A stretch of 64,000 nt of DNA from Ranitomeya imitator (Eukaryota). Positions 7,957 through 38,155 of the stretch are shown one piece after another; positions within the stretch are counted from its first letter, which is position 1; each line of letters opens with the position of its first letter. The DNA is taken from the NCBI RefSeq assembly GCF_032444005.1, contig NC_091287.1, positions 31,434,001 through 31,498,000 on the forward strand, read 5' to 3'. The notes beneath the pieces are model-generated. The model ran no database searches. It saw only the letters and a list, made by a program, of their open reading frames with translations, and had not been told where the DNA came from. The translations under genes and the position numbers were made by a program.

Positions 7957-8260
7957 GTAGTCTCAGATAGGTGGTCTTCTGTATAACAGCAGGTACCATC
8001 TGCATACAGAGCAGGCTTAGTTTTTCAGTCCAATCCACACAAGTCCTTTCAAATTATACATACTCTGAGGATGTGAGAAAGGGAATAATTATACTAGCCA
8101 TACAATTATGTATGTAAAGATCTCCTTTATCATTTCTTCTGCTTCTCCTCAGTGTAGGTATTACTGCACCCGTACAGATACCCCGGCTGTAGTTACATCT
8201 GTGGTCTGTACGTTAAGAATTTAGAACATATTTAAAGAAAAATGGGAATTTTCTTCATAC

Positions 8261-9119: not shown

Positions 9120-9814
9120 CTGTAGCAAAAAAAAAAAAAGAACACTTAAAGGGGATTATCATTTTTATCATTTATCATTTTTTCCCACCTCCCTATTGTA
9201 TAATAAACCCTCAGATCTGTCTTCCATCTTTTTCTGCCTCCAGCTCCTACATACTTGTCTCTGGGCGGTCCTTCGGTGCTGTCCGTGTGACCCCTGTAAA
9301 CTACATTTCCCACAGTCCCTTGCTTCTTTCTCCAGGCTCCTGCTGTCCCCCATGCACAGATGACATTAGCTGCTCCTCCAGCTGCTCTGTGATCTGGTAA
9401 TGGCCCCCGGGGCACAGCGGAGCGTAGTGTCTAATATTAGATCCACACATGTGATTATAGTCTGTCTCTACCATGTCCACCCAGTGTAGTGAGGACGGTG
9501 CAATCACCAATTCACTAGGATATTCAGCCAATGAGCTGTGATTGATATTCGGGGAATATCCCTTTAATGACAGGTCTCCCCACAGATCACAGCTGGCGAT
9601 GATTACGTGGGTCTCAGAAGGAGGACACGTTGCTAACAGATTATTAAATACCGAAGAGTTAAGAAAAATGGGGCAGAAAGAAGCCACTGTCCTGGGATCC
9701 ACCGCCGGCCTCCACCATGAGCACCGGACCAAAACATGCTTCATAAAAGGGACTGTCTCGCTATGCCAACTCTCCTATTAAAGTACATGGACACAGGTGT
9801 GTGATTATGATATG

Positions 9815-11100
9815 GAGGTATTATTTGGGCACTATATGGAATTATTATTTGGGCGTTATATGGTGATATTATTTGGGCACTATATGGAGACATTATTTGC
9901 ACAATATATGGTGGTATTATTAGGGTGCTATATTATGGTATTTCTTGGGTGCCGTATGGTGGTATTATTTGGGCAGTGCATGGAGGTATTATTTGAGCAC
10001 TGTATGGACATATTTGAGCACTGTATGGAAGTATTATTTGAGCACTGTATGGGGGTATTTGGACACTGTATGGAGGTATTATTTGAGTACTGTATAGAGG
10101 TATTATTTGAGTACTGTATAGAGGTATCTGAGCACTGTATGGAGGTATTTGAGCACTGTATGGAGGTATTATTTGAGTACTGTATAGAGGTATCTGAGCA
10201 CTGTATGGAGGTATTTGAGCACTGTATGGAGGTATTATTTGAGTACTGTATAGAGGTATCTGAGCACTGTATGGAGGTATTTGAGTACTGTGTGGACGTA
10301 TTTGAACACTGTATGGAGGTATTATTTGAGTACTGTATAGAGGTATCTGAGCACTGTATGGAGGTATTAATTGAGTACTGTATAGAGATATCTGAGCACT
10401 GTATGGAGGTATTATTTGAGCACTGTGTGGACATATTTGAACACTGTATGGAGGTATTATTTGAGCACTGTGTGGACATATTTGAACACTGTATGGAGGT
10501 ATTATTTGAGCACTGTGTGGACATATTTGAACACTGTATGGAGGTATTATTTGAGTACTGTATAGAGGTATCTGAGCACTGTATGGAGGTATTTGAGCAC
10601 TGTGTGGACGTATTTGAACACTGTATGGAGGTTTTATCTGAGTACTGTACAGAGGTATCTGAGCACTGTATGGAGGTATTATTTAAGTACTGTTTTGAGG
10701 TATCTGAGCACTGTATGAAGGTGTTATTTAAGTACTGTATAGAGGTATCTGAGCACTGTATGGAGGTATTATTTAAGTACTGTTTTGAGGTATCTGAGCA
10801 CTGTATGAAGGTGTTATTTAAGTACTGTATAGAGGTATCTGAGCTCTGTATGCAGGTATTATTTGAGCACTGTATGGACATATTTGAACACTGTATGGAG
10901 GTATTATTTGAGTACTGTATAGAGATATCTGAGCACTATATGGAGGTATTATTTAGGCACACTATGAAGGTATTATTTGGGCACACTATGGAGGTGTGCT
11001 ACATTGTGGCATTATTTGGTCACTGTATGGACATATTATTTTACCACTGTATTGAGTTATTATCTGAACACTGTATGGAGGTATTATTTGGGCACTGTGT
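9815..11100. repeat. 21/24-bp composite minisatellite (PEX1 intron 7)
   Basis: Unit gagcactgtatggaggt(att)attt; source of spurious 480- and 317-aa ORFs. Confidence 0.92.
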
Positions 11101-11532
11101 AAGAGCACTCAATAATTCAGTTTTCTCCGCATGTTCTGGAAGAAGTGCTTTGCATACAATGACTTGTCAAAGAGCCTTTACAGACCTTATTGTGGTCCGG
11201 ACTCAAATCCTCTATATATGTATGGTATGTGAAATATAAAAGTTTAATCTCCATATAAACCAGATCCAAAACGTTTAATAATAAATAACCTTTTTTTCTG
11301 ATAAAAAGTCATCACCTATCGGCGATATATTTTGTACCAGAGATAAAGGTGCCCCATTGGAGAGAAAAAAATTTCAATCAGCCGATCTGTGCGAGTCCCT
11401 GAGACTGGGCCCCCACTGATCAGCAAGCTGCCACCTATCCTGCAGTAGAGGTTAAAGGGGTTGTCCAGTGAGAACAAGTTATGTCACAGATATTCAGGCC
11501 AATAAATTATAACACATTCTCTTATTACTTGC

Positions 11533-11656
11533 CTTCACCAAGAGAAAGCTGTGCGGTGTCTGTTTTCCCTGAAATCCACGGCGAGGATGAGGTACTGTGC
11601 GAGTGCAGCCACGAGTTGAACGCAGCTTTTATTTCTTCGGCTGTAATGTCTTTACC
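11533..11656 (-). CDS. PEX1: PEX1 exon 7 (GKDITAEEIKAAFNSWL...), followed by a GC splice donor
   Basis: 124 nt keeps frame with exon 8; boundary GAAG|gcaagt. Confidence 0.88.
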
Positions 11657-12001
11657 CTTTAAAAGACAATTATTACGATATTAAAAGTGATTTTAGGTTT
11701 TATCATTTCTGGGATTGCTGAAATCTGAAAAACGTGGTCCAGGAAAAGAACGTTAAAGAAAAATAAGCCTGCAGGAGGGTAATTAAGCCACTGACCTAAA
11801 CACATAAATACACTTTGCACTGCTGGATCACAGAACCCACAGTCTTAGAAGGAATGTCTTTCCTCCATGCTTTACACTGCATCCTTTTAGAATATTCGTG
11901 TATCTTGGGTAAATTTGAAATCAGATTTTTTTTTTTTTTTAAATTAATTTCTCTCACTTGCTATTACCCGAAAACTTAGTATCTGTGATCCAGTCACTCA
12001 C

Positions 12002-12121
12002 CAAGCACTGCTTGGGTTGCAGCGTGATCGATGAAGGGATTTTGGGCCGGGGTTCCACTGACTGTATCCTGACGGCGGAGGATATATTAACATTCAAGTT
12101 CTTTCTTAATCTCTCAGGAAT
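12002..12121 (-). CDS. PEX1: PEX1 exon 6 (IPERLRKNLNV...TLQPKQCL)
   Basis: 120 nt, canonical sites, resembles human IPDDLRKRLNI...KLQPRENL. Confidence 0.93.
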
Positions 12122-13786
12122 CTGCATGGAGACAACATATAGGAAAAACAATCAGACAATCAAGAAACACAATACTGTCATATCATGTCACAATGTGTAC
12201 GATGCCGCACTTAGTTACTCTGTCCTTCCCCCTTACTTTACACTGCAGCTCTGCTTGCTCTGCTACTATGTTAGGAAATGTCCTGCTCTATATTATACAG
12301 ACAACTCACTGATATGAATGGGCACCATGTATCGCTTCATTTTCCCTGTGGTGGCGCTGCAAAAAAAGTGAACCAGGTTTGCAGAAGTATTACAAGTGAC
12401 CGCTGGGGGAGCCGAACAAAAGGCATAGTCCAGCGGCCATGTCAGTAGTCTGTGACCGGACTAGACTGCATGGGAGCCATGTGACCACCGCCTCGGCCGC
12501 TACCTGTTCTGATCAGTAGGTCTGGAGCAACGTCACGCAGCAATAATGGCGTTGCGCTGGGAATACCAATTATGAAAGACGCCGGGTGTTCCTGCAGGTA
12601 GGAGGACGTTTGCAAAGCTCCTGTCGAGAGGCCGGTGAAAACTGATGTCACTGATTGACCAAGGTCCTGGAAGTCGAATTGATCATCTCTGCAAAACGTA
12701 AACTTATATATATAGTTAAAAAAAAAATTAAAAAAAGAATAAAAATTGGTGTGTTACAAGTTTCTGAGGCCCATACGTTTTTTTTACTCTTCTATCGATG
12801 GTGCAGCATCAGTGTGTGTTTTTTGCAGAGTGAGCTGTAGTTCTTATTGCTACCATCTTAAATTACTTTTCACTTTATTTATTTTTTTATAGTCCACTTT
12901 CAGGACTTGAACCTTGTATACTCACTGCAATGCTTTAGTATTGTGGTAAATGTTCTGGTTATATTTTCAGCCTCTGGTCATTAGCAAAGATTTTTTTTTC
13001 CCACTGACAGCAAGCAGAAACATTGTATACGGTGAAGAATTAAAACACAACAAAAAATTGCCTTATTACCCACAGCATCCAATCAGAACTGAGCTTTCAT
13101 TCACTAAACTGCTCTGTAAAAATAAAAGCTGCATTGTGATTGGTTGCAGCCAGGCCAGTTTTTCTTTGAGATAGTATTGATAGATGAGGTCCAAAGGCCT
13201 ACATTTTCTAAAATTGATATAAGAAAAAAGAAGAATAGTTGCTCACTGCTCCTGTAATTTTTTTTTACTACATAATGCAACACGGAAGAATATATTTCTA
13301 TACAGATTTTTAAAGTTTTTTTTTTTACGTTTTTTTTTTCCCTTTTGGGGACTTGAACCTAAGATTATTTGATTGCTTATGATACATTCTGCAGTACTGA
13401 AGAATCAGAGTATATATAACAATCGAGTATATATCACTAGCAGGTGTAAATCCCCTATAGGGACTAAAAAATAAAAAAAAATGTATATGGATGTCTTCCT
13501 GGAGCAGAACAATATTGTATCATACAATTATTAGGTTCTGTAGAAGGACGTAGATCTGGGGATTTATTATGATGGAATATAGGCTGAACTGGATGGACAA
13601 ATGTCTTTTTTCGGCCTTACTAACTATGTTACTATATAAATATATACTTCAGTGTTGCAGTATATAGTAAGAATCACATGTGGCTGGGCTTTACAGGGAC
13701 CTCTTTAGCAGACCCCAGGTTGTCATTGAAATCCATGGGCACTCCACGACCACAGGAGGTTAAAATGCACAGATCAGAGCTATCTA

Positions 13787-14206: not shown

Positions 14207-14397
14207 TTAGAGGCAGGTGCAGGCTGTAAAGCACAGTCAGCACCAACCCTGTGTAGTGCGGGCTCAGCTCCTGAATCCGCTCCATGACAACAGAATACGT
14301 CTTGGATGAGGAAGGGGATAAGGAACCCTGTAAAACCGTTATACAATACAGCGACTTATTTATCAACGATTATTGGACGGCCGATGTAGTCACTGAC

Positions 14398-15089
14398 CCA
14401 AACTTTCGCAATATGTGTATTTCCATTTCTGGTGTCATAGTCAATGACGTCTTTGATATCGTCAAACCCGTGCCACACAATCTTCACCACGGCTTCAGGT
14501 ATCTGCGTGGTCTCCTCGTTCCTCCCGTCAGATCGCTCCACACTCGACTTGCTGCTCTTTTTCTTTCGTCTCTTAGGAGAAGGGATTTCGACAATTGTCC
14601 CATACGATACGACCACGTCTGGAAGTAAACCTGGAGGTTCTGGATACCATAGAAAAACCTGAACCGTGTTCTCATCTGTGTGGTCTAGGAACGCTCGGCT
14701 ATTTCTTATGATGGGAGGAACATGGCGGGAGACTCGGAAAACCGCTCCTAGGCTGACGCTTTTCAGCACAGTCCTCCCAAAGACGTCCTTATTGAGGCCA
14801 CGATGAGTCCGAGCGGGATTTTTTCCCAAAGCCCAAGAAAACAGATTTCCTAAAGAGTCCCATACGCTGGAGACCTCCGGAGGGGGCATTTCAGAGGTTT
14901 CACTCCTGTCTTTGAGTGATGACGTATCGCTGCTACTTGTGGTTCCATGGGTTGTTCTGTGGGATCCAAGATCATATTCTGCAGGGGGCAAATGCGACAA
15001 AACATTCTCAGAAGTTCTTTTTTTCGGAGTCACGATTAACTCTGTCAGAGGTTCCAGTCGGCCATAACTTGCAGCTGGAGTCAAAGCTC
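14398..15089 (-). CDS. PEX1: PEX1 exon 5 (large exon, ALTPAASYGRLE...IAKVW)
   Basis: Open frame of 692 nt, acceptor ctctccag, donor TGG|gtcagt; AASYGRLE and KVW motifs. Confidence 0.9.
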
Positions 15090-15224
15090 CTGGAGAGAAA
15101 AAGAATTTTCTTAAGTGTAAAATGTTTTTACTCCCACCTTGTTTATATAGCGCCAACATATTCTGCAGCGCTGTACAGAGATTACCATCACCCCCTCAAT
15201 CATTAAATACCTTCCTACAAACAC

Positions 15225-16160: not shown

Positions 16161-16275
16161 CTATCTGAATGTATATACACGTGTGCAGGTCCACCCACAC
16201 TGGAAACACGGCTTTGGGGTAAACTATCCGGATCTGGTCCAGAAGGTGCATTTCAAGGGCAGACGCATGCAGCTC
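16161..16275 (-). CDS. PEX1: PEX1 exon 4 ([29 protein letters not shown]...)
   Basis: 115 nt, canonical ag/gtgagt, strong similarity to PEX1. Confidence 0.95.
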
Positions 16276-17287: not shown

Positions 17288-17371
17288 CAGTATCTCCCAG
17301 TCATCAGCAGACAGTGGCTCCACTATGACTTCCTTACAAGATGGGACATTCCTACACGGCTTTAGGAACAC
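17288..17371 (-). CDS. PEX1: PEX1 exon 3 ([28 protein letters not shown])
   Basis: Manual reverse translation; [11 protein letters not shown] matches the human motif as I recall it; 84 nt, ttttcag / gtaaag. Confidence 0.95.
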
Positions 17372-18213
17372 CTGAAAAGAAATAGTAACATAGTGAAGAT
17401 ATCACAAGCATCACAGATTGGAGGAGGATCGAGAAAGAAGTGGAGGAATTTGTCAGTCCTATAATTTATGGTCGGTCTCTATTGCAATTAATAGGAATTA
17501 CGAACCCGACGGGGTCCAGGAACGTTGTACCAACAAGGCATCATGTCTGCACCTCGGCCATAACTTGTGAACCCGGTCTAAGTCACTGGTCTTCCAAACC
17601 ATGAGTCCGCAGCTGATGCAAAACTACAACTACTAGCATGTCCCGACAGTTGTAGGTGCCATTTTGCAAAACTCGCGAGGGATGAAGGCAATTCCCTTTA
17701 ACCAAAGTGAGAACACATCCCTATTCATTCTTTGAAAAAAAGAAAAAAAAAAAAAAAGGACATTACATTTTTATGGTTGATCTGGTCTCATCCCTTCTCC
17801 CTGCTGCAGGATTGTGGGGGTCCTTGAGCCATAGGCTATAACTTTTTTTTTTTTTTTATAGGTTGATAGAGTGGTATCAGAGCTTTTTTTTTCTTCATTT
17901 CTTGCAGTACAAGCTGTAGTTTTTAATTCGTGCAAATTTTGAAGTCCAGATGATTTTCTGATTTCTTCTATTACATTTTTTTTTTTGAGGCAAAGTGACT
18001 GAAACACAGCGATTCTGCCATTTTAATTTTCTATTCTGCGTTCATCATATGGTATAAATATTATTATTGTATTTAATTGCTTTCGATAGTTCCGCACATT
18101 GAGATTCATTTGTTGCGATTATTTATTCGATTTTATTTACATTACAAAAAGAGAAGGGATATGAACTTTTAGATTTTTTTATTTTATAAATATATTTTAC
18201 ACGAATATTTTTA

Positions 18214-18257
<44 letters not shown>

Positions 18258-18687
18258 GCAAGTAGATGTACGCCAGCTTTAGCCAATGGAAATCTGATCT
18301 GACAGTATGTGTGCATTTCACAGACTGTACACGTACCACAAAGCTCAGACTGCCCACAGGCCATATATGACTATCAGGAGAGCCACGGCCGGACCGGACC
18401 TCACGGCGATGTGGACGCAGACCATGAAAGTCAGATGTGTGAAAGCAGCCTAAATCCCAATCAGGCCCTGTTCACACATAAGCTTTTGAGGTGTTAAAAA
18501 CTATGTTTTTTCCAAGTAGAAAACGCCTCAGGAAAAACTAAATTTTGGGGGAAGTTTTATTTATTTTTTGGCAGCCTTTTGACTGGGCTGAACACCAAGT
18601 TTTTCCAAAGCCTCTAAATGGGAAAGATTCTTAAAAAAAAACAAAAAACCCTCACATCTCATTGGATTTTTAATAGGATTAGATAAG

Positions 18688-19422
18688 TGTTATGATCAGG
18701 TGACCTTGGAGCAGCATGAAAACTTTCACTGGAGTAGGTGGTAACTATACTGACCGCAAATCCTGATCTTAACACCGCAGCTAGAAGTAGCCGTGGGGTG
18801 TACCTAACAAGGCCTAGACACCTCGTCACAGCCGGAGGACTAGATACCCCTATAGATGGAAATAGGAATTTCTACCTTGCCTCAGAGCAGAACCCCAAAG
18901 GATAGGCAGCCCCCCACAAATATTGACTGTGAGTAGTAGAGGAAAAGACACACACAGTCAGAAAACAGGATTTAGCACAAGAGGCCACTCTAGCTAAAAT
19001 AGGAAAGGATAGGACAGAGTTCTGTGCGGTCAGTATTAAAACCCTTCCAAAAATATCCACAGCAGATTATACAAAAATTCCTCCATCTAACTAAAGACGT
19101 GGAACGTATATCTGCAACTCCAGAGAATCCTACACTCAGAGCAGGAATACAATCAAAAAAACAAGCACACAGCTTGTGTGCCATAGAAAAAGAAACAGAC
19201 ACTTATCTTTGCCGAATTGCCAGCTAAGCAGGAGAAGCCAGACAGAGATCCAACACTTCCCAAGAAACATTGACAACTGGCAAGGACTAACGAGTCCTGC
19301 AAACCTAAATACCCCAGTCAGAATTGCAATCATCAGATACACCTGTCCAGGACTGCAGCCCAGGGACAACTGCATTACCACCTACAACCACCGGAGGGAG
19401 CCCAAAAGCAGAATTCACAACA
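18688..19422. mobile_element. Solo LTR, copy 1
   Basis: TGTTATGA...TCACAACA ends; GATAAG duplicated on both sides; homologous to 47768-48541. Confidence 0.88.
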
Positions 19423-19689
19423 GATAAGAATGCATTTATGATGTTCTTTCTTTTGTAACAATTTTAGAGCAAAACCACTTAAAAAAAAAACAAAAACAAG
19501 CCTTCCATGTGAACGGTGCTGGACATTGACAGACATTGTACAACTGCCACTATCTTTTTTTTATTTTTCATACTGCTGGCGCATTTTGTGTCACAATATT
19601 ATGGAACACGGCAATTGCGTCACATTATATGATGACACCGTATAATCTCAGTATTGCTTTATTAAGATGAGAGGTGATGTAGGAGAACG

Positions 19690-21190
19690 TGTATATAGTG
19701 AGGGGAGGCCGTATATAAGGAGGAGAGGCCGTGTATAGTGAGGGGAGACCGTGTATAAGGAGAAGAGGCCGTGTATGAGTAGGGGAGGCCGTGTATAAGG
19801 GGGGGAGGCCGTGTATAAGGGGGAGAGGCCGTGTATAAGGAGGGGAGGCCGTGTATACGGAGGGGAGGCGGTGTATACGGAGGGGAGACCGTGTTTAAGG
19901 AGGGGAGGCCGTGTTTAAGGAGGGGAGGTCGTGTTTGAGGGGAGGCCGTGTATAAGGAGGGGAGGCCGTGTTTAAGGAAGGGAGGCCGTGTTTAAGGAGG
20001 GGAGGCCGTGTACAAGGAGGGGACGCCATGTATAGTGAGGGGAGACCGTGTATAAGTAGGGGAGGCCGTGTATAAGGAGGGGAGGCCGTGTACGAGGGGA
20101 GGCCGTGTATACGGAGGGGAGGCCGTGTTTAAAAAGGGGAGGCCGTGTTTAAGGAGGGGAGGTCGTGTTTGAGGGGAGGCCGTGTATAAGGAGGGGAGGC
20201 CGTGTTTAAGGAAGGGAGGCTGTGTTTAAGGAGGGGAGGCCGTGTACAAGGAGGGGACGCCATGTATAGTGAGGGGAGACCGTGTATAAGTAGGGGAGGC
20301 CGTGTATAAGGAGGGGAGGCCGTGTACAGTGAGGGGAGGCCGTGTACAGTGAGGGGAGGCCGTGTACAGTGAGGAAAGGCCGTGTACAGTGAGGGGAGGC
20401 CATGTACAAGGAGAGGAGGCCATGTATAGTGAGGGGAGGCCGTGTATAAGGAGGGGAGGCCGTGTATAAGGAGGGGAGACCGTGTATAATGAGGGGAGGC
20501 CGTGTATAGTGAGGGGAGGCCATGTACAAGGAGAGGAGGCCATGTATAGTGAGGGGAGGCCGTGTATAAGGAGGGGAGGCCGTGTATAAGGAGGGGAGGC
20601 CGTGTATAAGGAAGGGAGGCCGTGTACAGTGAGGGGAGGCCGTGTATAAGGAAGGGAGGCTGTGTACAGTGAGGGGAGGCCGTGTACAGTGAGGGGAGGC
20701 CGTGTACAGTGAGGACAGGACGAGTATAGTGAGGGGAGGCCGTGTATAAGGAGGGGAGGCCGTGTATAAGGAGGGGAGGCCGTGTATAAGGAGGGGAGGC
20801 CGTGTATAAGGAGAGGCCGTGTATAAGGAGGGGAGGCCGTGTATAAGGAGGGGAGGCCGTGTATAAGGAGAGGAGGCCGTGTATAGTGAGGTGAGTCATG
20901 TATAAGGAGGGGAGGCTGTGTACAGTGAGGGGAGGCCCTGTATAAACACGGCCTCCCCTCCTTATACAAGGCCTCACCTCACTATACACGGCCTCCTCTC
21001 CTTATACAAGGCCTCACCTCACTATACACGGCCTCCCCTCACTATACACGGCCTCCCCTTATTAAGGAGGTGAGGTCGTGTATAAGGAGGTGAGGTCGTG
21101 TGTAAGGAGGGTAGGCCGTGTATAAGGAGGGTAGGCCGTGTATAAGGAGGGTAGGCCGTGTTCAGTGAGGGGAGGATGAGTATAGTGAGA
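19690..21190. repeat. G-rich 20-bp minisatellite with an internal inversion (about 20944-21061)
   Basis: Unit aggaggggaggccgtgtata; the reverse-complement unit appears locally. Confidence 0.95.
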
Positions 21191-21219
21191 GGAGGCCATT
21201 ATCACTACTGTATGTGGTA

Positions 21220-21430
21220 ACGTTTCCATGACAGCAGGAACAGCGGGCGGGAAAGTAGCGTCGGAAATAGGGGGCGGAGCTACTTCTAGTGAACTCCTCC
21301 CTACTGATGCGCGCGTAACCAATCAGCAGCAGGCTTGTCAGGCTCCCGCCAGATTATAAACCGCGCCACCGGAGGAGAGCGGGAGGCCGGAAGTCTCTTC
21401 AGATCAGAATCAGCAGCCGCCGCCGCCATC
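21220..21430 (+). promoter_or_regulatory. Putative promoter/5'UTR of the intronless UHRF1
   Basis: X-box-like GTTTCCATGACAGC 21222-35, E2F-type GGCGGGAAA 21246-54, GC box GGGGCGGAG 21271-79, CCAAT 21319-23, TATAAA 21355-60, ETS-type CCGGAAGT 21387-94, Kozak ATG at 21431. Confidence 0.65.
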
Positions 21431-23695
21431 ATGTGGATCCAGGTGCGCACCATGGACGGCCGGGAGACTCACCGCATTGACTCCCTGTCTAAGCTGACCA
21501 AGGTGGAGGAGCTGCGGGAGCGGATCCAGGAGGTGTTCGGAGCGGAGCAGGACCGGCAGCGGCTCTTCTACCGGGGGAAGCAGATGGAGGACGGACACAC
21601 GCTCTTTGATTACAGCGTCGGCCTGAATGACATCGTGCAGCTGCTGCTCCGCCAGCTCCCGCCGCCTCCTCCTCCTCCCTCGGTGCCGGTAACGGCGGAA
21701 GAGCCCGATGACGACTCCCCGATGTTGGAGACTGAGCCGGGGGAGGAGGAGCCCAGCGCCCGTGGCCTGTACCGGATAAAGGAGCCGGTGGACGCCCGGG
21801 ACCTGCACATGGGCGCCTGGTTCGAGGCGGAGGTGGTGAACGTGACCCGGGGAAGCCCCGGAGACCCCGCCGATGACGTCATCTACCATATACAGTATGA
21901 GGACTATCCTGAGGACGGGGTGGTGCAGCTGAGGGGTCCTGACGTGCGCCCCCGGGCCCGGAGCAGGCTGTCCTGGGAGGAGCTGCGGGCCGGACTGGTG
22001 GTCATGCTCAACTACAACCCGGACGACCCCAAGGAGCGGGGCTACTGGTACGACGCCGAGATCCTGCGCAAGAAAGAGGGCAAGGCCAGCAGGGAACTGT
22101 ACGCCAAGCTGCTAATGGGGGACGCCGGAGACCCCATAAACGACTGCAAAATCGTATTTGTGGATGAGGTGTTTCAGATTGAGAAGCCCGGGACCCCAAT
22201 CCCAGCAGAGACCCTGCCCCCACCTCCTGAGGAGGTGCCTGCCAAGCCGCAGACTGGACCCCAATGCAAGCTGTGCAAGGATGACCCCAAAACCAAATGC
22301 CGCATGTGCGCCTGCCACGTCTGCGGGGGCAAACAGGACCCCGAAAAGCAGCTGCTGTGCGACGAGTGCGACATGGCCTTCCATATCTACTGCCTGGACC
22401 CTCCACTGTCCGCCCTGCCAGATGTGGATGACTGGTACTGCCCGGACTGCAGGAACGATACCAGTGAGGTGGTGCTGGCGGGGGAAAAGCTAAAGGAGAG
22501 CAAGAAGAAGGCCAAGATGGCGTCTGCCAGCTCCTCGTCCCATAGAGACTGGGGGAAAGGCATGGCGTGCGTCGGGCGCTCCAGAGAGTGCACCATTGTC
22601 CCGTCCAATCACTACGGCAAGATACCCGGTGTACCCGTTGGCACCATGTGGAAGTTCAGGGTGCAGGTTAGCGAGGCGGGTGTGCACCGGCCTCACGTGG
22701 CGGGCATCCATGGGAGAAGCAATGATGGCTCCTATTCTCTGGTCCTGGCTGGTGGTTATGAGGATGATGCTGATGATGGCACAGAGTTTACCTACACCGG
22801 GAGCGGAGGTCGTGACCTCTCCGGTAACAAGCGGACAGCTGAGCAGTCATGTGACCAGAAACTGACCAACATGAATCGAGCCCTGGCCCTCAACTGCAGC
22901 GCCCCCATCAATGACAAAGAAGGGGCCGAAGCCAAAGACTGGAAAGCTGGTAAACCCGTGCGTGTCGTGCGTAATGCCAAGGGGAGTAAACACAGCAAAT
23001 TCGCCCCAGAAGAGGGCAACCGATACGACGGCATCTACAAAGTGGTGAAATACTGGCCTGAGAAGGGCAAGTCCGGCTTCCTCATATGGCGCTACCTACT
23101 GAGGAGAGATGACGACGAGCCGGCGCCATGGACCAAGGAGGGCAAAGAACGTGGTAAAAAACTAGGCCTCACTATGCAGTACCCCGAGGGTTACCTAGAG
23201 TCTGTGGCCAACAAGGAGCGGGAGAAGGAAAACATAGATTCAGATGAACTAGAAACGCCGGTCAAAGGGAAGAGAAAAAGGAAATCTGTCATTGAGGATG
23301 ATGATGAAGACGACGAGGAGGGAACGCAGAAGAAAACTAAAACTGAGCTTGTGTACGACTTGACCCCGGAGCAAAAAGAGCTGATCGAAAAGGACGAGCT
23401 GAACGTCAAGTTATGGAGCGAAGTGATGACGCATCTAAAGGAGGGCCCCAAATTCATCAGCAAGGTGGAGGAGACCTTCCTGTGCATCTGCTGCCAGGAG
23501 GTGGTGTACGAGCCCATCACCACCGAGTGTCTGCACAATATCTGCAAGAGCTGCCTGGACCGCTCCTTCAAGGCCTCCGTGTACAGCTGTCCTGCCTGCC
23601 GACACGACCTGGGCAAGAACTACGACATGAGGGTGAACAAACCCCTGCAGAGCGTCCTCGGCCAGCTCTTCCCAGGTTACGAGAGGGGGCGATAA
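21431..23695 (+). CDS. UHRF1: Intronless UHRF1 (E3 ligase / DNA-methylation maintenance factor), 754 aa, probable retrogene nested antisense in PEX1 intron 2
   Basis: Single ORF from the Kozak-context ATG (gccgccatcATG; the ORF-track start at 21335 is an upstream TTG). Shows UBL ([10 protein letters not shown]...[12 protein letters not shown]), tandem Tudor ([20 protein letters not shown]), PHD ([21 protein letters not shown]), SRA ([28 protein letters not shown]) and RING. N- and C-termini fit UHRF1 rather than UHRF2. Confidence 0.96.
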
Positions 23696-24552
23696 CTGGT
23701 GGGAAGACATTACGTTATTATTACAGCTCTTTTCGAGACTCTGCCATAATTGCCGATTCTTCCTTCCCCCTAAACTCTCCTGTCCCTTACATCTGACTCT
23801 GAGATCAAAGGCTGCAGCGGACTTTACATCCCATGGTAACTGGACATGACTTGCTGGCATACATGGAGAAGAAGCAATGTTGACCACATGCAGCTCTAAC
23901 CATCTGGATATCTGCGATTTAATCTGGATTAGGAAGATTGGACGTGTGTGAAGCCAAGTCCCTATAATAATAATAATGTTTTGCAGGGGTATAAGCCACC
24001 GCTGATCAGGGTCTATCAGCTTGTTGATTATCTCCTGTGTTAGTAAGGGGTATTCCAATCTTTAGAAATTATCACCCTTCTGGTGGTCTGACTGCTGGGA
24101 CCCACACTAATCCGAAAAACTGGGCTCCAGAGTGCTTTCCGAATATAGTGGTGACCAGATGTGTGCACCACTGTGCCATTCTCTATGGGACTGTCGCAGA
24201 AGGCTGAGCACTGTACTCTGCAATCTCTGGCGGCTCCACAGAGAATGAACATAGCAGTGGGGCACATGTACAGCCACCGCTATACTCAAATAGTCTCGGT
24301 ATTTGGATGCCACGCTGATCAGCAAGTTTGGTGCGAATTCTAAAAATTGGAACAACCCATTAAACACTGACAGCAGTGAGAAGTAATTTATTGTAACTTA
24401 GATTTTTTTTTTTTATCTCTAATCAGTTTGATTTAGGAGTCCAGTGGGTGGTCCTACTTGTAAATGGACAGATCATTGATTCCAATCTTTGTCCAGAATG
24501 AAGAGATTAATTGCTTATAACTACTCTTCACAGGTCTAGATCAGTAGTTTAA

Positions 24553-24830
24553 AGGGATATTCCCATCTACAAGATCCTAGCCCAATTAGAAACGCAATAT
24601 AGTTTTTCTGATTCACTGTCTTTGCTCATGCAAAAGGCATTATAGGACCTTGGGTATCCATGGTTACGATAACTGATAGTGGTTGTAACCATGGATACGC
24701 AAGATCCTGTAATTCCTGCACATGATGAGAGACCTAGCGAATCAGAAAAACTATACTACGTTTCTAATTGAAGATATTTTATTCCACCTACTACATGTTG
24801 GGCTAGGGTCTTGTAGATGGGAATACCCCT
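24553..24830. mobile_element. Kolobok/T2-type fold-back MITE
   Basis: TTAA|AGGGATATTCCCATCTACAAGA ... TCTTGTAGATGGGAATACCCCT|ATAA; whole element is palindromic. Confidence 0.72.
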
Positions 24831-26450
24831 ATAACTTTACGCCATATCTGTATTATTGTGAGGCCTCCTGCTGACTATTAGATGTATGAGGTTGTTTTGG
24901 GTCCATTGAACCTTCTGCAGCAGAGCCGACTTCCCGGCCTGGATACAATGGCCCCGCATGTACCAAATAGTGATTTAAATGTTCCTTCAGGGAGTAATCC
25001 GTTATCACCGTATGTTCATGTGTTCTCTGTACTGCTGGTAATGGCATCCAATGTCCAAGTCTATGCTTCACTGTGCCTGGCCTTCTGTCTCTTGCACTAT
25101 TTTACTTTTAAAGGGTAGAACTCTGAGGACCCCCCAACAATCCAGATGAGGCCCGAGCATGTGTACCTCTCCATGGGACTGCCGAGATGAGTCCATTGCT
25201 CAGCTGGTCCCACCATGTGACTATGCTCTAATATCCAAAAGTATTATAGGGGTGATTTCTCCATTATCCGCCTTGCTCCTTGTTCTCTACCTTCCACAGA
25301 GAACACAATTGGATCCTTGTGTCATCAGTCACTGATTCCCTTCTCCCCAGGCAATTGGGATGGGGGAGGGCTCCGTTTTTTTTTTGGCGTTACCTCTGTT
25401 CTGCTACATCAATGTCTGTGCGCTTTCTATGTCGGTTGGTTTCTTTTTAACATTGAAATCTGATATAAATATTAAGTCAGAATAGTTCAAGTAGGGTAAA
25501 TGGTTAGAAGGTAACTTTTAATGAGTAAGAGCTCAGCGCAAGAAGACACTACAATAGTACAGTGGTTCCAGGAAAGAAGGTATCGATCTCGCCCCATTCC
25601 TGTAGTGGACCCGAGTACCATGCAAGAGTGTATGGCCAGAAGGGTGAATTAGTAACCTAATATCCCCAGTATAACTGGTGCTCTGCCAAGGACATGACTC
25701 AAGTATGACCTATGAACACCGAGGATATGCCCCGAAAGAATAGTCCACCCAAGGCGTCCCGGCCTCAGCAGGAGAGTGTACTTACAAGAGGCCGTGCAGC
25801 ACTTTGTTTGCTTCTTTTAGGGCTTACTGTCACTGCAGCACCCTGACTTATACCCCTTAGATATGAATCTAATGGATCCTCTTCTGCAAGTACACTCCCC
25901 TGAGGAGGCTTTGCTTTTGAGGTGGAAACGCGTCAGTGGGTTATGCTTCATAGGTTATACTTGGGTACTACCCTTGTCTGGGCGGGAGTTATACTTGGCA
26001 CATTAGGTTACCGGTTCACCCCCTGGCCATACACTCTTGCATTGGCATGTAATAATAATCTTTATTGCATGTGACTTGGGTCCACTACAAGAATTGGGTG
26101 AGAGCTATTCCCCTTTTCCTGGCACTGCCACCACTGAGCATTGTATTATTGTACATATTCTATATCTGAGTGTCCTACGTGCACTCTTCTGCTGATTTAA
26201 TTCTGAAGAGCTAATGTCATTGGTATTGATGGACCTCTTGCTTTGCTATGAAATACTTTACCATGTTTTGGGGATTTTTCTTCTATATTGTTCACATATA
26301 AATAAATGTATTTCATTTCTACAAGATACAAGTGGACTTCATTCTTATATGTGCAGAATGATCATGGTCTGGTGGGTGGGGTGTTTCAGATGTCATAGGT
26401 GAAAAAAAAATAGCTTTTCACCAGTGTTGACTCAGTGTTAGTTTTCTTAA

Positions 26451-26784
26451 GGCTATGTGCCCACGTTGCGGAATAGTGTGTGGATTTTTCAGCACCGGTT
26501 TTGCAAAATCCGCAGTAAAACGCACTGCGTTTTACCTGTGGATTTACCGTGGGTTTTGTGCGGATTCCTATTATGGAGCAGGTGTAAACCGCCGCGAAAT
26601 TGGCACAAAGAATTGACATGCTGCGGAAAATACAACACAGCGTTTCTGTGCAGCATTTTCTGTAGCATGGGCACAGCGGATTTGGTTTTCCATAGGTTTA
26701 CATGGTACTGTACACCACATGGAAAACAGCTGCAAATCCGTAGCGGCTAATCCGCAGCATAATCCGCGACGTGTGCACATAGCC
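26451..26784. mobile_element. Harbinger-like MITE
   Basis: GGCTATGTGC(C/A)CACGT TIRs, TAA TSD. Confidence 0.85.
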
Positions 26785-27272
26785 TAAAAGGGTTGTCCAG
26801 CCTTGAGGTACAAGTCTAGTTACAGACTGCAGGCGTGCGAATCCTCAAAGTACATGCACGTGGATTCTCCAATGATGGGAGTGGGCGATCATAAGCATGC
26901 GATATAGATACGCCTGGCACAATCAGGCTAGACTGTTTCCAGCCTTGCTCAATACACTTGCATTGAGTGAGGCTGCGTACGTCTAGTCGGAATGTGGCTG
27001 AAAGTATGTATGATGGCCAACATGGGTGAATCCTTGTAGTTTAGGACCTGACTAATGTAGAAAGAAGCTTTAGCTAGCATCCTGACTGATACAGAGAGAC
27101 CCCCGGCATAGGAGAGGGCCGGAGGAGCTACAGAAAAAGGACCAAACAATGGGACCACAGGTCAGAGTATAAGCAGGCCATATGTGAAGTTTTGAATATT
27201 AGATGTTTCCAGCAAAGAATACCAGCCCCTCTGTACATTACATGTCTGCCCGGAGGTGAAAAAAGTAATTTA

Positions 27273-27579
27273 CAGCATTTTCCGGCGTATAAGATGACTT
27301 TTTAACCCCTGAAAATCTTCTCAGAAGTCGGGGGTCGTCTTATATGGCGGATGCGGTGCCCTGCGGTCGCCGCATATGGTGCGGGGAGCGGTCCAGATGA
27401 CGACTAGAGAGGCAGAGAAGGGCGGGCTTGATTCACTTACACCTTCCCGATGAGGCACCTAGTCATCGGGACCGCTCCCCGCACCATATGCGGCGGCCGC
27501 AGAGCTCAGCACACGCCGTATAAGATGACCCCCGACTATTTTGAAAGTTGGGGGTCGTATTATACGCTGGAAAATACGG
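27273..27579. mobile_element. pogo/Tigger-like MITE
   Basis: TA-flanked TIRs resembling CCGTATTTTCCGGCGTATAA. Confidence 0.72.
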
Positions 27580-27693
27580 TACTTATTTTCTGGAATGAAA
27601 TATCAAGAATGTTTTAAGGAAAAAAAAAAATAGTTGTGGACAAACCTGTTACAGGTGTGAGACGTGAATCTTGTTGGGAAGATAATGAAACTA

Positions 27694-29569
27694 CAATGCC
27701 TACAAGTAGTATTCAACCCCCTGCAGATTTGGCAGGTTTAATAAGATGCAAATAAGTTAGAGCCTTCAAACAAGAGCAGGATTTATTAACAGATGCATAA
27801 ATCTTACAAACCAAAAAGTTTTGTTGCTCAGTTAAATTTTTTATAAATTTTAAACATAAAAGTGTGGGTCAATTATTATTCAACCCCTAGGTTTAATATT
27901 TTGTGCAATAACCTTTGTTTGCAATTACAGCTAATAATCGTCTTTTATAAGACCTGATCAGGCCGGCACAGGTCTCTGGAGTTATCTTGACCCACTCCTC
28001 CATGCAGATCTTCTCCAAGTTATCTAGGTTCTTTGGGTGTCTCATGTGGACTTTAATCTTGAGCTCCTTCCACAAGTTTTCAATTGGGTTAAGGTCAGGA
28101 GACTGACTAGGCCACTGCAACACCTTAATTTTTTGCCTCTTGAACCAGGCCTTTGTTTTCTTGGCTGTGTGCTTTGGGTCGTTGTCTTGTTGGAAGATGA
28201 AATGACGACCCATCTTAAGATTGTTGATGGAGGAGCGGAGGTTGTTGGCCAAAATCTCCAGGTAGGCCGTGCTATCCATCTTCCCATGGATGCGGACCAG
28301 ATGGCCAGGCCCCTTGGCTGAGAAACAGCCCTACAGCATGATGCTGCCACCACCATGCTTGACTGTAGGGATGGTATTCTTGGGGTCGTATGCAGTGCCA
28401 TCCAGTCTCCAAACGTCACAAGTGTGGTTGGCACCAAAGATCTCGATCTTGGTCTCATCAGACCAGAGAACCTTGAACCAGTCAGTCTCAGAGTCCTCCA
28501 AGTGATCATGAGAAAACTGTAGACGAGCCTTGACATGACGCTTTGAAAGTAAAGGTACCTTACGGGCTCGTCTGGAACGGAGACCATTGCAGTGGAGTAC
28601 GTTACTTATGGTATTGACTGAAACCAATGTCCCCACTGCCATGAGATCTTCCCGGAGCTCCTTCCTTGTTGTCCTTGGGTTAGCCTTGACTCTTCGGACA
28701 AGCCTGGCCTCGGCACGGGAGGAAACTTTTAAAGGCTGTCCAGGCCGTGGAAGGCTAACAGTAGTTCCATAAGGCTACGTTCACACTAGCGTTGTGCGCC
28801 GCTGCGTCGGCGACGCAACGCACGCAAAAACGCTGCGTTTTGCAACGCATGCGTCGTTTTTTGCCGAAATTTGGACGCAAGAAAAATGCAACTTGTTGCG
28901 TTTTCTTGGTCCGACGCTAGCGGCAAAAAAGACGCATGCGTCGCACAACGCAACAAAAAAAAAAACGCATGCGTCCCCCATGTTAAATATAGGGGCGCAT
29001 GACGCATGCGTCGCCGGTCGCAAACACGATGCAAAACGGGAAACGCTAGTGTGAACGTTACCTAAGCCTTCCACTTCCGGATGATGCTCCCAACAGTGGA
29101 GACAGGTAGGCCCAACTCCTTGGAAAGGGTTTTGTACCCCTTGCCAGCCTTGTGACCCTCCACGATCTTGTCTCTGATGGCCTTGGAATGCTCCTTTGTC
29201 TTTCCCATGTTGACCATGTATGAGTGCTGTTCACAAGTTTGGGGAGGGTCTTAAATAGTCAGAAAAGGCTGGAAAAAGAGATAATTAATCCAAACAAGTG
29301 AAGCTCATTGTTCTTTGTGCCTGAACTATTTCTTAATACTTTAGGGGAACCAAACAGAATTCTGGTGGGTTGAGGGGTTGAATAATAAATGACCCTCTGA
29401 AAAGACTTTTCACAATTTAAAAAAAAATAAACAAATAACATTCTTTTTTGCTGCAGTGCATTTCACACTTCCAGGCTGATCTACCGTCCAAATGTCACAA
29501 TGCCAAGTTAATTCCAAATGTGTAAACCTGCTAAATCTGCAGGGGGTTGAATACTACTTGTAGGCACGG
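27694..29569 (-). mobile_element. Decayed Tc1 element with frameshifted transposase (about 27893-29217)
   Basis: TA-flanked TIRs C(A/C)(A/G)TGCCTACAAGTAGTATTCAACCCCCTGCAG; [15 protein letters not shown] and [10 protein letters not shown] lie in broken frames; interrupted by a MITE. Confidence 0.92.
28773..29062. mobile_element. PIF/Harbinger-type MITE inserted into the Tc1 transposase
   Basis: TIR GGCTACGTTCACACTAGCG / CGCTAGTGTGAACGTTACC, TAA duplicated on both sides, Tc1 frame resumes across it. Confidence 0.88.
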
Positions 29570-31182
29570 TAGCAGTTTGTCCGTATAGGCGACACGTGTC
29601 TTGCAGTAATCCATTGTGTCAGTGCCGAGAAATCAAGAGTTCAAGCCACATGCAAATCACTCTGCAAATGCACTGGGGGCGTGTCACTACTCGGTGCACT
29701 GATACGCCCCAAATGCATTTCCAGACCAATTTGCATATGGTTTCAATCCTGGATTTCTCAGTTTCAGTAATAAATTATTCATTATTTTATACAAATTATA
29801 TGGAACAATGCTGAACCAAAACACATTTTTCAGGGTCCGGCAGCTTGTTCACCATTCCCTCTTAGGAATAAGCCAATTCAGGCACCAAATATAGAAGAAT
29901 GGCTCCAGCTACATGATCCCAAAAGACTGAGAACAAAATATCCTCGATATGTAAACCCAGCGAAACGCAGAATAGGAACACTTGTCCCTAGGAACGAAGG
30001 AAGCTGCTGTTTTCTTGGGAATGTTCACACTGAGTTGTATGGGTTTTTTTTGTTTGTTTTTTGAGGCGAAAGCAAACCTGGCTTTCAAGAGAAATTCACG
30101 TCCATAATCCCAAGTATTTTTTAGATGAGATTTTCAGATCTGATTCTGTTTCTAAAGTCTTTTTTTTTCTTTCAGCTTTTTGTCCTGACTACATTGAGCG
30201 GATTCACAAGGAATCTGCATCAGACAAGTCCCCTGTCCCTAGAGGTGACGTTTTCAAAACCTTCCAGGAAAAAAAAAAAAAACTTGCTGTCTGAGCATCA
30301 ACGTAAATTTCCCATTGAGAGTGGAGCCAAGGAGTAGATCATTTAGGTTTTGATGAGAATTTTGAAGCTGAATCGGATTCAAAATCCTTTCTAAATCTTA
30401 GCCAGACTTAGGAATATTTATGCTGTGGTTTTTTTTTTTTTTGTTTAATTTTTCTGGATGGAAATGGAAAATCCACATTGCTATTCACATGCAATTTTCT
30501 GAAATCTGCAACAAACTTCAGGCAAAAGGCTGCAAAAAAAAGATCTGGTTGGATCTTGAAACCTTGGCAAAAACAAGATAGAAATCTATGTCCAGAATCT
30601 CTTTAAAAAAAAATAACGATGGATTTTTCTGCCTCAAAAAAAGAAATTAAGCTGGAAAAAGTCCAATTGAGTTTTTGGAGAATTGCTTGTTGCGGTCGTG
30701 TGGGTGTCACAACGTGGCGCCATTCACCTCTACAGCGCTGTGATGTAGCAGCGGCACCGGCTGACGCCGTATTGCCTCACCGTAAAATCAACTATGATCT
30801 CCATTTTGATAGGTGAGGACTTGAGGATCGGTAGAAGTCTGACCACTGGGACCCTCATCAATAATGATTAGGAGGATCCTTAGTCCTCTGGTTTAATGAA
30901 CAGTTGGTCAATCACGTGCATTGTCGCTCCATCTGACGGACATTGCTGGGCCACCATCACAAGCAGGACATTGGGGGGACCCTTGGTATTTTGATCTGTC
31001 TATAACCTCTAAGGTCAGACCCCAGTGATCACACTTTGTATGACCCCCTTAAAATGCGCCAATCTATGCTTAAAACTCTGTATGTTAATACACACGTGTG
31101 AATGTCCGGGCATGCTGAGAGTTGTAGTTTCTCAACAGCCGAGAAGTCACAAGTCCCCGGAGCTGGAGAACACGCCCAGTAC

Positions 31183-31323
31183 CTGCTGTCCATCCACAAG
31201 TCCCAGCTTCTCGCCCAGCTGTCTGTTGAGCTCCACCATGGTGCTGTCTGTAACTCTGCTGCGATTCTCCATCCAACCCAGATAGACCGGCTGCTCCTCC
31301 CATGTCACCTCTACAGCGCCGCC
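31183..31323 (-). CDS. PEX1: PEX1 exon 2 (GGAVEVTWEEQPVYLGW...LGLVDGQQ)
   Basis: Acceptor tcctccag, donor gtactg, 141 nt phase 0-0; similar to human PEX1 exon 2. Confidence 0.93.
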
Positions 31324-33319: not shown

Positions 33320-33433
33320 CTGTTCCAGGCGCAGCTGTGCGCTGAGCTCGGGTGTCAGGCGCAGGAACGCGTCCTTAGCGCCGGTGAGCGTCACGGTGAC
33401 AGCCGCAGCCCCCGATATCCCCCCTCCCAGCAT
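33320..33433 (-). CDS. PEX1: PEX1 coding exon 1 (MLGGG...LRLEQ, 38 codons)
   Basis: Resembles the PEX1 N-terminus (AAVTVTLTGAKDAFLRL vs human AAVTVAFTNARDCFLHL); donor CAG|gtgaga; lies in CpG-rich sequence. Confidence 0.92.
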
Positions 33434-33993: not shown

Positions 33994-34101
33994 ATGACGG
34001 ATCCCCGTTTGCAGATAGAAGTTCATCCGCACCACGAACAGCGAAAGATCTGCGCCTCCCGAGCGAAGTACCGAGATGGACGGAATCCGAGAGCAGTCAA
34101 A
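33994..34101 (+). CDS. RBM48: RBM48 coding exon 1 (MTDPRLQ...RAKYRDGRNPRAVK)
   Basis: RAKYR.GR.PRAVK motif of RBM48; donor AAA|gtgggt. Confidence 0.92.
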
Positions 34102-34239
34102 GTGGGTGGGGTCATTATATAACGCTAAATGTGTACAGATTATTGTGGGATTAGAAACACCTGCATACAGAATAGCGAGGACCTGGTACTTGTAGTCCTA
34201 CAACACATGGAAGATGGTGATACAGAGGCAGTAATAATA

Positions 34240-37200: not shown

Positions 37201-38155
37201 TGAGTGCAGCTCTGGAGTATAATACAGGATGTAACTCAGGATCAGTAATGTAATGTATGTACACAGTGACTGCACCAGCAGAATAGTGAGTGCAGCTCTG
37301 GAGTATAATACAGGATGTAACTCAGGATCAGTAATGTAATGTATGTACACAGTGACTACACCAGCAGAATAGTGAGCACAGCTCTGGAGTATAATACAGG
37401 ATGTAACTCTGGATCAGTAATGTAATGTATGTACACAGTGACTGCACCAGCAGAATAGTGAGTGCAGCTCTGGGGTATAATACAGGATGTAACTCAGGAT
37501 CAGTAATGTATGTACACAGTGACCGCACCAGCAGAATAGTGAGTGCAGCTCTGGAGTATAATACAGGATGTAACTCAGGATCAGTAATGTAATGTGTGTA
37601 CACAGTGACTGCACCAGCAGAATAGTGAGTGCAGCTCTGGGGTATAATACAGGATGTAACTCAGGATCAGTAATGTAATGTATGTACACAGTGACTGCAC
37701 CAGCAGAATAGTGAGTGCAGCTCTGGAGTATAATACAGGATGTAACTCAGGATCAGTAATGTAATGTATGTACACAGTGACTGCACCAGCAGAATAGTGA
37801 GTGCAGCTCTGGGGTATAATACAGGATGTAACTCAGGATCAGTAATGTAATGTATGTACACAGTGACTGCACCAGCAGAATAGTGAGTGCAGCTCTGGGG
37901 TATAATACAGGATGTAACTCAGGATCAGTAATGTAATGTATATACACAGTGACTGCACCAGCAGAATAGCGAGTGCAGCTCTGGGGTATAATACAGGATG
38001 TAACTCAGGATCAGTAATGTAATGTATGTACACAGTGACTGCACCAGCAGAATAGTGAGTGCAGCTCTTTGGTATAATACAGGATGTAACTCAGGATCAG
38101 TAATGTAATGTATGTACACAGTGACTGCACCAGCAGAATAGTGAGTGCAGCTCTA
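34240..38155. repeat. 86/81-bp satellite, about 45 copies (RBM48 intron 1)
   Basis: Unit gtgactgcaccagcagaatagtgagtgcagctctggggtataatacaggatgtaactcaggatcagtaatgtaatgtatgtacaca. Confidence 0.97.

Follow-up and report, generated by a model that had tools for sequence, protein, structure and literature searches.

UHRF1 (ICBP90/Np95) is essential, normally single-copy and central to DNA-methylation inheritance. Orphan retrogenes are functional retrocopies whose parent was lost. In another known arrangement, F8A/int22h, an intronless gene lies in intron 22 of human F8, and inverted copies of it lie beyond the host; sequence is exchanged within such pairs, and a crossover would invert the host exons between them. 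Here we describe an intronless UHRF1 gene of the frog Ranitomeya imitator, called copy A, which lies in a 64,000-nucleotide stretch of contig NC_091287.1 (assembly GCF_032444005.1, positions 31,434,001 to 31,498,000; hereafter the window) antisense within an intron of the PEX1 gene. A second intronless gene, copy B, is encoded on the same contig. The 'A' paralogue is, we think, probably an old functional retrogene with an inverted duplicate, B, and a parent that has been lost.

The mammalian protein has been studied in ways that bear on the two frog copies. In human UHRF1 an R-R-K motif in the linker between the tandem Tudor domain (TTD) and the PHD competes with a polybasic K-R-K motif for the TTD groove, and the two set the H3K9me3-reading state (PMC4615792). 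In mouse UHRF1 a spliced-in nine-residue insertion with a proline patch in this linker affects how TTD and PHD are coupled, where the protein localises and how actively it ubiquitylates (PMC7430637). After ultraviolet damage, degradation of UHRF1 is driven by CK1-delta, which phosphorylates S108 (PMC9621053).

Copy A encodes a full-length UHRF1-like protein

The open reading frame (ORF) of copy A has 754 sense codons and runs from ATG to stop without interruption; an in-frame TTG lies upstream at 21335, and a start there would give a protein of 786 amino acids (aa). No other UHRF1 copy lies in the 64-kb window. Pfam finds the domains in the UHRF1 order, UBL - tandem Tudor - PHD - SRA - RING (Table 1), and the protein aligns end to end with the full-length human and mouse UHRF1 structures (E = 0). 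The RING scores under the Pfam cut-off, yet every one of its Cys and His residues is conserved relative to human UHRF1, and so are all those of the PHD. With full-length human UHRF1 (PDB 9lpk_A, native numbering) as the reference for residue numbers, the Tudor cage residues F152, Y188 and Y191 are all present, in the stretches GAWFEA and YEDY. The 5-methylcytosine pocket LAGGYEDD and the NKR-finger stretch of the SRA match the human sequence exactly and are invariant throughout the multi-species UHRF1 alignment. Over the whole protein, copy A keeps 347 of the 364 positions (95%) that are at least 97% invariant among 92 other vertebrate UHRF1 proteins. A first-pass annotation of the window, made by a model from the letters alone, had described just such an uninterrupted 754-codon frame with five UHRF1 domains and had judged the Tudor cage, the SRA NKR finger and AGGYEDD pocket, and the PHD and RING Cys/His residues to be intact; the ORF list, Pfam, the full-length alignment and the comparison with human UHRF1 agree.

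Copy A is closer to UHRF1 than to UHRF2. Its best matches are all UHRF1, its full-length PDB matches are UHRF1 only, and its SRA matches UHRF1 structures with E values of 1e-134 to 1e-119 (UHRF2, 3e-116). Annotated UHRF1-like proteins match it at 96% identity in Dendrobates tinctorius and Phyllobates terribilis, and at 85-87% in toads, tree frogs and leptodactylids.

The gene is under constraint. Compared with the A copy of Engystomops, dN (non-synonymous) is 0.072 and dS (synonymous) 0.65, a dN/dS ratio of 0.11; over all pairs the ratio is 0.04-0.17. The first-pass annotation had proposed dN/dS, there against the parent, as a check, and the values obtained in these comparisons are not near 1. 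By homology, with all domains and key residues intact and under strong purifying selection, copy A should still act as UHRF1: the SRA would bind hemi-methylated CpG, the TTD-PHD module would recognise H3K9me3 and unmodified R2 on the H3 tail, and the RING and UBL would ubiquitylate H3 and recruit DNMT1.

Two intronless copies bracket most of PEX1

The position of copy A follows from the exons of its host. PEX1 exons 1 to 4 have canonical splice sites that can be read directly; exon 1 is conserved with Engystomops, Pyxicephalus and Mixophyes, and exon 2 has 83% aa identity to the Engystomops exon. The boundaries of exons 2 and 3 thus place copy A antisense within intron 2, and the first-pass placement between these exons on the opposite strand is borne out by Pfam and the splice sites.

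The same position, antisense in PEX1 and next to RBM48, is occupied in R. imitator, D. tinctorius, Engystomops, Pyxicephalus, Pseudophryne and Mixophyes, and exon mapping shows that the intron is likewise intron 2 in Pyxicephalus and Mixophyes. A look at the PEX1 locus of other anurans, which the first-pass annotation had recommended, thus finds copy A in hyloid, ranoid and myobatrachoid frogs; together with the dN/dS of 0.11, this supports its claim of an old insertion under purifying selection. Copy B has a position of its own, 2.5-5 kb past the 3' end of PEX1, on PEX1's strand and before an aminotransferase gene, as found in Nanorana, Pyxicephalus, Dendropsophus and Mixophyes. The two copies therefore face in opposite directions on either side of PEX1 exons 3-24, at a distance of ~35 kb in Pyxicephalus and ~46 kb in Mixophyes.

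Every neobatrachian UHRF1 gene examined by contig look-up has a gene range equal to the length of its coding sequence (CDS), and is therefore intronless. Among the cluster members both copies occur in Bufo bufo, Rana temporaria, Aquarana, Anomaloglossus, Pseudophryne, Mixophyes and R. imitator, and every species sampled has retained both, exactly one A and one B. The R. imitator copy B is XP_069585507.1 (P0137), annotated 'UHRF1-like'; the A and B proteins of this species are 88% identical. B evolves more slowly than A (stem lengths 0.019 vs 0.14 in the whole-protein tree), and a single cluster at 90% identity takes in the B copies of six hyloid genera.

The first-pass annotation had listed existing annotation of the locus across anurans among the things that would refute its reading, and on novelty this applies, as NCBI annotates 'UHRF1-like' in many anurans. 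The name 'UHRF1' is given to B of Rana temporaria, B of Mantella and A of Leptodactylus (P0133, P0024 and P0005) and 'UHRF1-like' to the rest, so a name does not tell which orthology group, A or B, a gene belongs to. Literature searches found no paper on an intronless frog UHRF1 locus.

Gene conversion and the age of the A/B pair

Similarity between A and B within a species is a mosaic. In Mixophyes the two genes are 100% identical over codons 1-180, third positions included, and their homology continues for another ~600 bp upstream; at codons 200-280 and 600-640 identity is 70-82%. In Pyxicephalus the figures are 93-99% over codons 1-140 and 58-83% elsewhere. For R. imitator the comparison was of proteins only: these are 97-100% identical over aa 1-120, the fast-evolving Pro-rich linker included, and 48-68% identical around aa 200-280 and 600-640, a pattern repeated in six other species. 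Gene conversion keeps homogenising the 5' parts of A and B, that is, the promoter, the UBL and the first linker.

Trees built from different parts of the protein differ in the same way. In that of aa 1-130, the A and B proteins of a species group together, and 17-18 changes are needed to map the A/B labels, which does not improve on shuffled ones. In that of aa 196-292 plus 596-646 the A copies form one clade (SH-aLRT 100), the B copies a second (94) and the parents a third (92), with the minimum number of label changes; the A/B duplication is therefore older than the divergence of ranoids, hyloids and myobatrachoids. Two segments, the end of the TTD with the TTD-PHD linker and the linker on the polybasic side, have stayed distinct between A and B since before the neobatrachian radiation. 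Independent A/B duplications in each lineage, as the whole-protein trees had suggested, were considered and rejected in favour of a single old duplication with gene conversion, given the shared A and B positions in three lineages, the conversion mosaics in the DNA and the clean clades of these regions.

A crossover between the A and B inverted repeats would invert PEX1 exons 3-24. No inversion was seen in Mixophyes or Pyxicephalus; the hazard to PEX1 follows from the inverted geometry together with the 100%-identical tracts.

What sets copy A apart: the regulatory linkers

Ten of the 17 near-invariant positions that copy A has lost fall in the UBL-TTD linker, and these are lost in every A and B copy. 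The linker is the site of the S108 degron segment, which hardly varies among other vertebrates and is found in Spea, Xenopus and mammals (Dasypus was aligned); in the neobatrachian copies it has been deleted or replaced, and no A or B copy has it. Its loss suggests that the control of UHRF1 stability may be altered in neobatrachian frogs.

Other changes separate A from B. At the position of human R295-R296-K297, copy A has AKPQT where copy B and the parents have RR or KR, and its PPPP-containing insertion aligns, by HMMER, to the Pro-patch linker of mouse UHRF1. The R-R-K motif is regulatory and is not among the characters by which the family is recognised. The polybasic KGKRKRK, corresponding to K-R-K, is conserved in copy A. 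The acidic tract that follows it is common to A copies of hyloids (P0001, P0123) and ranoids (P0018) and absent from B and the parents, and the A copies of both groups also have a changed second-Tudor segment and a changed TTD-PHD linker that B and the parents lack. Copy B keeps a parent-like linker, PRRQNGPEC, and has no acidic tract. A and B do not differ in any catalytic or reader residue. Because the segments that distinguish the two copies are, in mammals, elements of TTD-groove docking and histone reading, copy A would be an allosteric variant and copy B the parent-like form.

Could A instead be redundant with B, a back-up without a role of its own that gene conversion holds close in sequence? 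The conversion tracts are indeed extensive and recurrent, and the shared catalytic and reader residues fit this idea as well. Two segments, however, have escaped conversion in every lineage, and carry A-specific derived characters common to hyloids and ranoids. Within the A lineage these A-specific regions have dN/dS (omega) values of 0.08-0.12, that is, they are themselves under purifying selection, and both copies have been kept in every species sampled. We consider redundancy unlikely.

Promoter, 3' end and base composition

Upstream of the start codon of copy A lies a putative promoter with several candidate motifs (Table 1), whose assignment to transcription factors, coming from motif reading, is putative. 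A block of CCAAT, ~18 nt, TTCCCGCC, TATAAACCGCGC, ~10 nt and GCGGGAG is conserved upstream of both A and B in hyloids and ranoids. This common block implies that the second copy arose by DNA duplication and not by a second retroposition. Nucleotide similarity between copy A and its Engystomops counterpart spans only 21319-23695, ending exactly at the stop codon; the 3' flank, with the first candidate poly(A) signal after the stop, is not conserved with Engystomops.

The promoter of copy A is abutted by a G-rich minisatellite with a 20-bp unit (~63 copies, 19688..21197, Tandem Repeats Finder), in which the orientation of the unit flips at 20946-21059 to give a local palindrome.

Copy A has a GC content of 0.59, a GC content at third codon positions (GC3) of 0.755 and an observed/expected CpG ratio of 0.70, in flanks with a GC content of 0.39-0.44; the first-pass description of the gene as rich in CpG and GC3 was thus accurate. 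GC3 of the multi-exon UHRF1 of Spea is 0.44. In all retrocopies GC3 falls steeply from 5' to 3', from 0.81-0.93 over aa 1-75 to 0.37-0.76 over aa 563-646, and where parental exon 2 of Spea has 0.36 the retrocopies have 0.69-0.91. The 5' part, where GC3 is highest in all copies, is also the converted part. GC-biased gene conversion would explain the gradient, and so would a CpG island close to the promoter; since the two predict the same GC3 pattern, it is not decisive as a test of GC bias.

Origin of the copies and fate of the parent

The nearest outgroup sampled, Spea bombifrons (Pelobatoidea), has a UHRF1 gene of 16 coding exons over 18.6 kb. None of its 15 CDS introns has a counterpart in copy A, and in the alignment the copy A protein is colinear with the parent across every exon junction. 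The loss of all the CDS introns of a multi-exon gene favours the processed retrogene proposed in the first-pass annotation and, together with an apparent change of location, suggests that a retroposition on the neobatrachian stem came first and loss of the parent later. The protein trees (43 and 54 proteins) place the neobatrachian UHRF1 proteins in one clade with a long stem (support 100/100, length 0.18), apart from the archaeobatrachian multi-exon genes. No parent-type (multi-exon) protein appeared for any neobatrachian among the best 120 matches or the cluster members, from which we infer that the multi-exon parent was lost in Neobatrachia. The first-pass annotation had offered a second methylation-maintenance factor and a relocated replacement of the parent as alternatives. 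Each is true in part: there are two retro-derived paralogues, A and B, and no parent-type protein is annotated beside them.

The history we favour would run as follows. A spliced UHRF1 mRNA would first have been copied into DNA by reverse transcription and integrated close to PEX1, in the stem lineage of Neobatrachia. The intronless gene, with at least ~110 bp of promoter, would then have been duplicated in inverted orientation, giving A in PEX1 intron 2 and B past the 3' end, after which the multi-exon parent would have been lost.

Several points weigh against this history or against a distinct role for copy A. No run of eight or more A residues occurs within 2.7 kb after the copy A stop, and no target-site duplication is definable there, as the first-pass annotation had already remarked for both poly(A) tail and duplication; eroded boundaries are expected of an insertion older than the neobatrachian radiation. 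Parent loss is seen at the level of protein annotation only, so that a parent which has decayed or lacks annotation could exist. Whole-protein trees pair A with B within each lineage (myobatrachoids, ranoids and nobleobatrachian hyloids), a conflict between tree and position that mosaic gene conversion accounts for. In approximately unbiased (AU) tests on whole proteins, A monophyly was not rejected and not proven (p = 0.27, 0.38), and the regions that separate A from B were picked after their within-species divergence had been seen. As to function, the Pro patch occurs in hyloid A copies only, those of ranoids being without it; the functional meaning of the A linkers is extrapolated from mammalian work, and expression of copy A is inferred from selection alone.

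A different origin would have UHRF1 lying beside PEX1 ancestrally, at the B position, and losing its introns in situ by recombination with a cDNA, with A as a DNA duplicate. The promoter block shared by A and B accords with this, as at least one copy must have arisen by DNA duplication. So might the sequence ~270 bp upstream of the Spea ATG, where AAACCGCGC and then a GAGGAGCGCG-like element occur with CCAAT before them, and which could mean that parental promoter DNA was retained. The resemblance is of short motifs in a different order, however, which may reflect the same transcription-factor sites, and it appears too weak to decide whether the parental promoter was carried over. The Spea neighbourhood also speaks against intron loss in place: a search of 10 kb on either side of Spea UHRF1 found no PEX1 (its 3' exons included), RBM48 or aminotransferase sequence, while as a positive control it recovered PEX1 exons when two neobatrachians were compared; the annotation calls no genes over the same distance. 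Human UHRF1 and PEX1, moreover, lie on different chromosomes. In-situ intron loss is accordingly improbable, and retroposition followed by inverted duplication remains the history we favour.

Being intronless and nested in the intron of another gene, like most dead retrocopies, copy A might be taken for a recent or unconstrained processed pseudogene still open by chance, but its intact positional orthologues in hyloids, ranoids and myobatrachoids, its conserved promoter block, its vertebrate-invariant residues and its dN/dS of 0.11 (at dS 0.65) exclude that. An assembly artefact, from cDNA contamination or a mis-join of processed UHRF1 into PEX1, was raised in the first-pass annotation as misassembly; it has nothing specific in its favour and is very improbable, since the order PEX1 exon 3 / A / exon 2, exon 1 / RBM48 recurs in independent assemblies of other genera (D. 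tinctorius, Engystomops on two contigs, Pyxicephalus, Pseudophryne and Mixophyes) and the gene carries conserved upstream sequence that is not transcribed.

Other features of the window

RBM48, head-to-head with PEX1 in the window, is annotated beside PEX1 in D. tinctorius, Pyxicephalus and Mixophyes. Directly after its first exon starts an 86-bp satellite (~46 copies, 34236-38154, and again at 55173-55490). A related repeat stands at the same place in Engystomops (L001, 17332-19695; blastn 73% over 2.4 kb), so that the satellite may either have kept its position or belong to a repeat common among anurans. Long tandem arrays with periods of 24-64 bp are dense in the window, the largest having ~241 copies of a 25-mer over 6 kb, and account for the GC-rich blocks of the composition profile. 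Amid such arrays and N runs, an intact ORF for a 355-aa Tc1/mariner-type transposase (Pfam DDE_3 and HTH_Tnp_Tc3_2) lies at 52264-53331 on the plus strand. The N runs, at 50147-50329 and 51789-52014, are assembly gaps or masked sequence. There are no Rfam matches in the window.

Table 1. Coordinates of copy A, its upstream motifs, the host gene and neighbouring features, numbered from the first nucleotide of the window.
Feature	Residues (aa)	Position	Strand	Basis or remark
Copy A CDS		21431..23695	+	intronless UHRF1-like gene, 754 aa + stop
Copy A UBL	3-75	21437-21655	+	Pfam
Copy A UBL-TTD linker, Pro-rich, without DSG/S108 phosphodegron segment	76-112	21656..21766	+	alignments
Copy A TTD	112-254	21764-22192	+	Pfam, E 3e-58
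Copy A-specific TTD-PHD linker: Pro-rich insertion, PPPP at aa 263-266, AKPQT	256-275	22196..22255	+	alignment
Copy A PHD	295-340	22313-22450	+	Pfam
Copy A SRA (SAD_SRA)	394-562	22610-23116	+	Pfam, E 1e-50
Copy A polybasic KGKRKRK, then acidic tract EDDDEDDEE	612-618, 622-630	23264..23320	+	alignment
Copy A RING (C3HC4)	685-723	23483-23599	+	Pfam 24.1 bits, cut-off 27
Copy A putative promoter and 5' untranslated region		21247..21430	+	motifs read from sequence
GCGGGAAA (E2F-like), upstream of copy A		21247-21254		motif reading
CCAAT, upstream of copy A		21319-21323		motif reading
CTCCCGCC, upstream of copy A		21343-21350		motif reading
TATAAACCGCGC, upstream of copy A		21355-21366		motif reading
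GCGGGAG, upstream of copy A		21379-21385		motif reading
CCGGAAGT, upstream of copy A		21387-21394		motif reading
Kozak context of copy A start, GCCATCATG				motif reading
Candidate poly(A) signal variant ATTAAA, first after stop		24359..24364	+	pattern scan
PEX1 exon 1 CDS, 38 codons, ATG at 33433		33320..33433	-	Pfam PEX-2N positions 1-27
PEX1 exon 2		31183..31323	-	Pfam PEX-2N positions 30-77, E 2e-16; AG/GT splice sites
PEX1 intron 2, host intron, 13.8 kb		17372..31182	-	exon 2 and exon 3 splice sites
PEX1 exon 3		17288..17371	-	Pfam PEX-1N positions 1-16; splice sites; conserved with Pyxicephalus (L004), Mixophyes (L009)
PEX1 exon 4		16161..16275	-	Pfam PEX-1N positions 17-54
Further PEX1 exons within		14359-15195, 11957-12151, 11528-11680	-	ORF pieces, tblastx to Pyxicephalus and Mixophyes PEX1 flanks
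Further PEX1 exons within		5946-6182, 2995-3150 (AAA match), 2415-2630	-	ORF pieces, Pfam, tblastx
RBM48 first coding exon, head-to-head with PEX1		33994..34119	+	tblastx to Pyxicephalus RBM48 start, 78% over 36 aa
RBM48 second exon		~38750-38897	+	
Long tandem arrays		55724-61752, 46166-47765, 48542-49087, 50453-51357, 41473-42404, 6773-7957, 1183-2165, 9810-11085		

Significance and comparison with known systems

Neobatrachia make up the great majority of frog species. If the history proposed here is right, a major vertebrate clade appears to have swapped the essential UHRF1 for retrocopies, a natural case of replacement by retroposition. Xenopus has the multi-exon gene, and what is learnt there about methylation may not hold for Rana, Bufo or dendrobatids. 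The 'UHRF1-like' annotations of frogs hide two orthology groups, and whole-gene trees of these genes mislead owing to gene conversion. The two copies differ exactly in the linkers that mammalian biochemistry names as conformational switches, and so would constitute a natural experiment in allostery. A fuller proposition, that Neobatrachia run maintenance methylation without a canonical uhrf1, on two retro-derived paralogues that flank PEX1 as inverted repeats, their promoters and 5' halves held identical by conversion and their TTD-PHD linkers and polybasic flanks held different by selection, with the degron lost and PEX1 prone to inversion, we put forward tentatively, as possible rather than probable. 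Were it true, the frogs would have a paralogue-based equivalent of the mouse splice-isoform switch, and loss of the S108/beta-TrCP degron from both paralogues would amount to a rewired control of UHRF1 stability.

Among described systems the closest in protein terms is vertebrate UHRF1 itself. Copy A shares with it the five-domain order, 70-76% identity, the Tudor cage, PHD, SRA, KGKRKRK and the RING ligands. It differs in gene structure, being intronless and apparently relocated into PEX1 intron 2 where the Spea gene has 16 coding exons, and in lacking the S108 segment, having AKPQT and a Pro-rich insertion in place of R-R-K, and carrying an acidic tract after the polybasic stretch. Copy B is like A in its retro-derived origin, promoter block and chromosome, and unlike it in position, orientation and its parent-like linkers.

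Mouse UHRF1 V1 and V2 are likewise two forms that differ in the TTD-PHD linker, where the Pro-patch insertion alters coupling and H3K9me3 reading (PMC7430637); the mouse forms come from one gene by alternative splicing, however, whereas the frog forms come from two intronless genes. The A linker of the frog is also without the Arg by which the mouse linker is held in the R-pocket, and the likeness would seem to be one of resemblance only.

As for gene history, the frog copies are like orphan retrogenes in being intronless, apparently relocated, under purifying selection and conserved over a large clade in which no parent-type gene is annotated. They differ in the duplication of the retrogene and its concerted evolution, and in that parent loss is known at the annotation level only. 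The case fits a known category, the functional retrogene that replaced its parent; what it adds is that the retrogene has an inverted duplicate, evolves partly in concert with it and is nested in the intron of a host. The geometry of A and B around PEX1, finally, resembles that of F8A/int22h. As at F8, such inverted repeats are a potential structural hazard to the host gene, here PEX1; the frogs differ from the F8 case in that no inversion has been observed among them.

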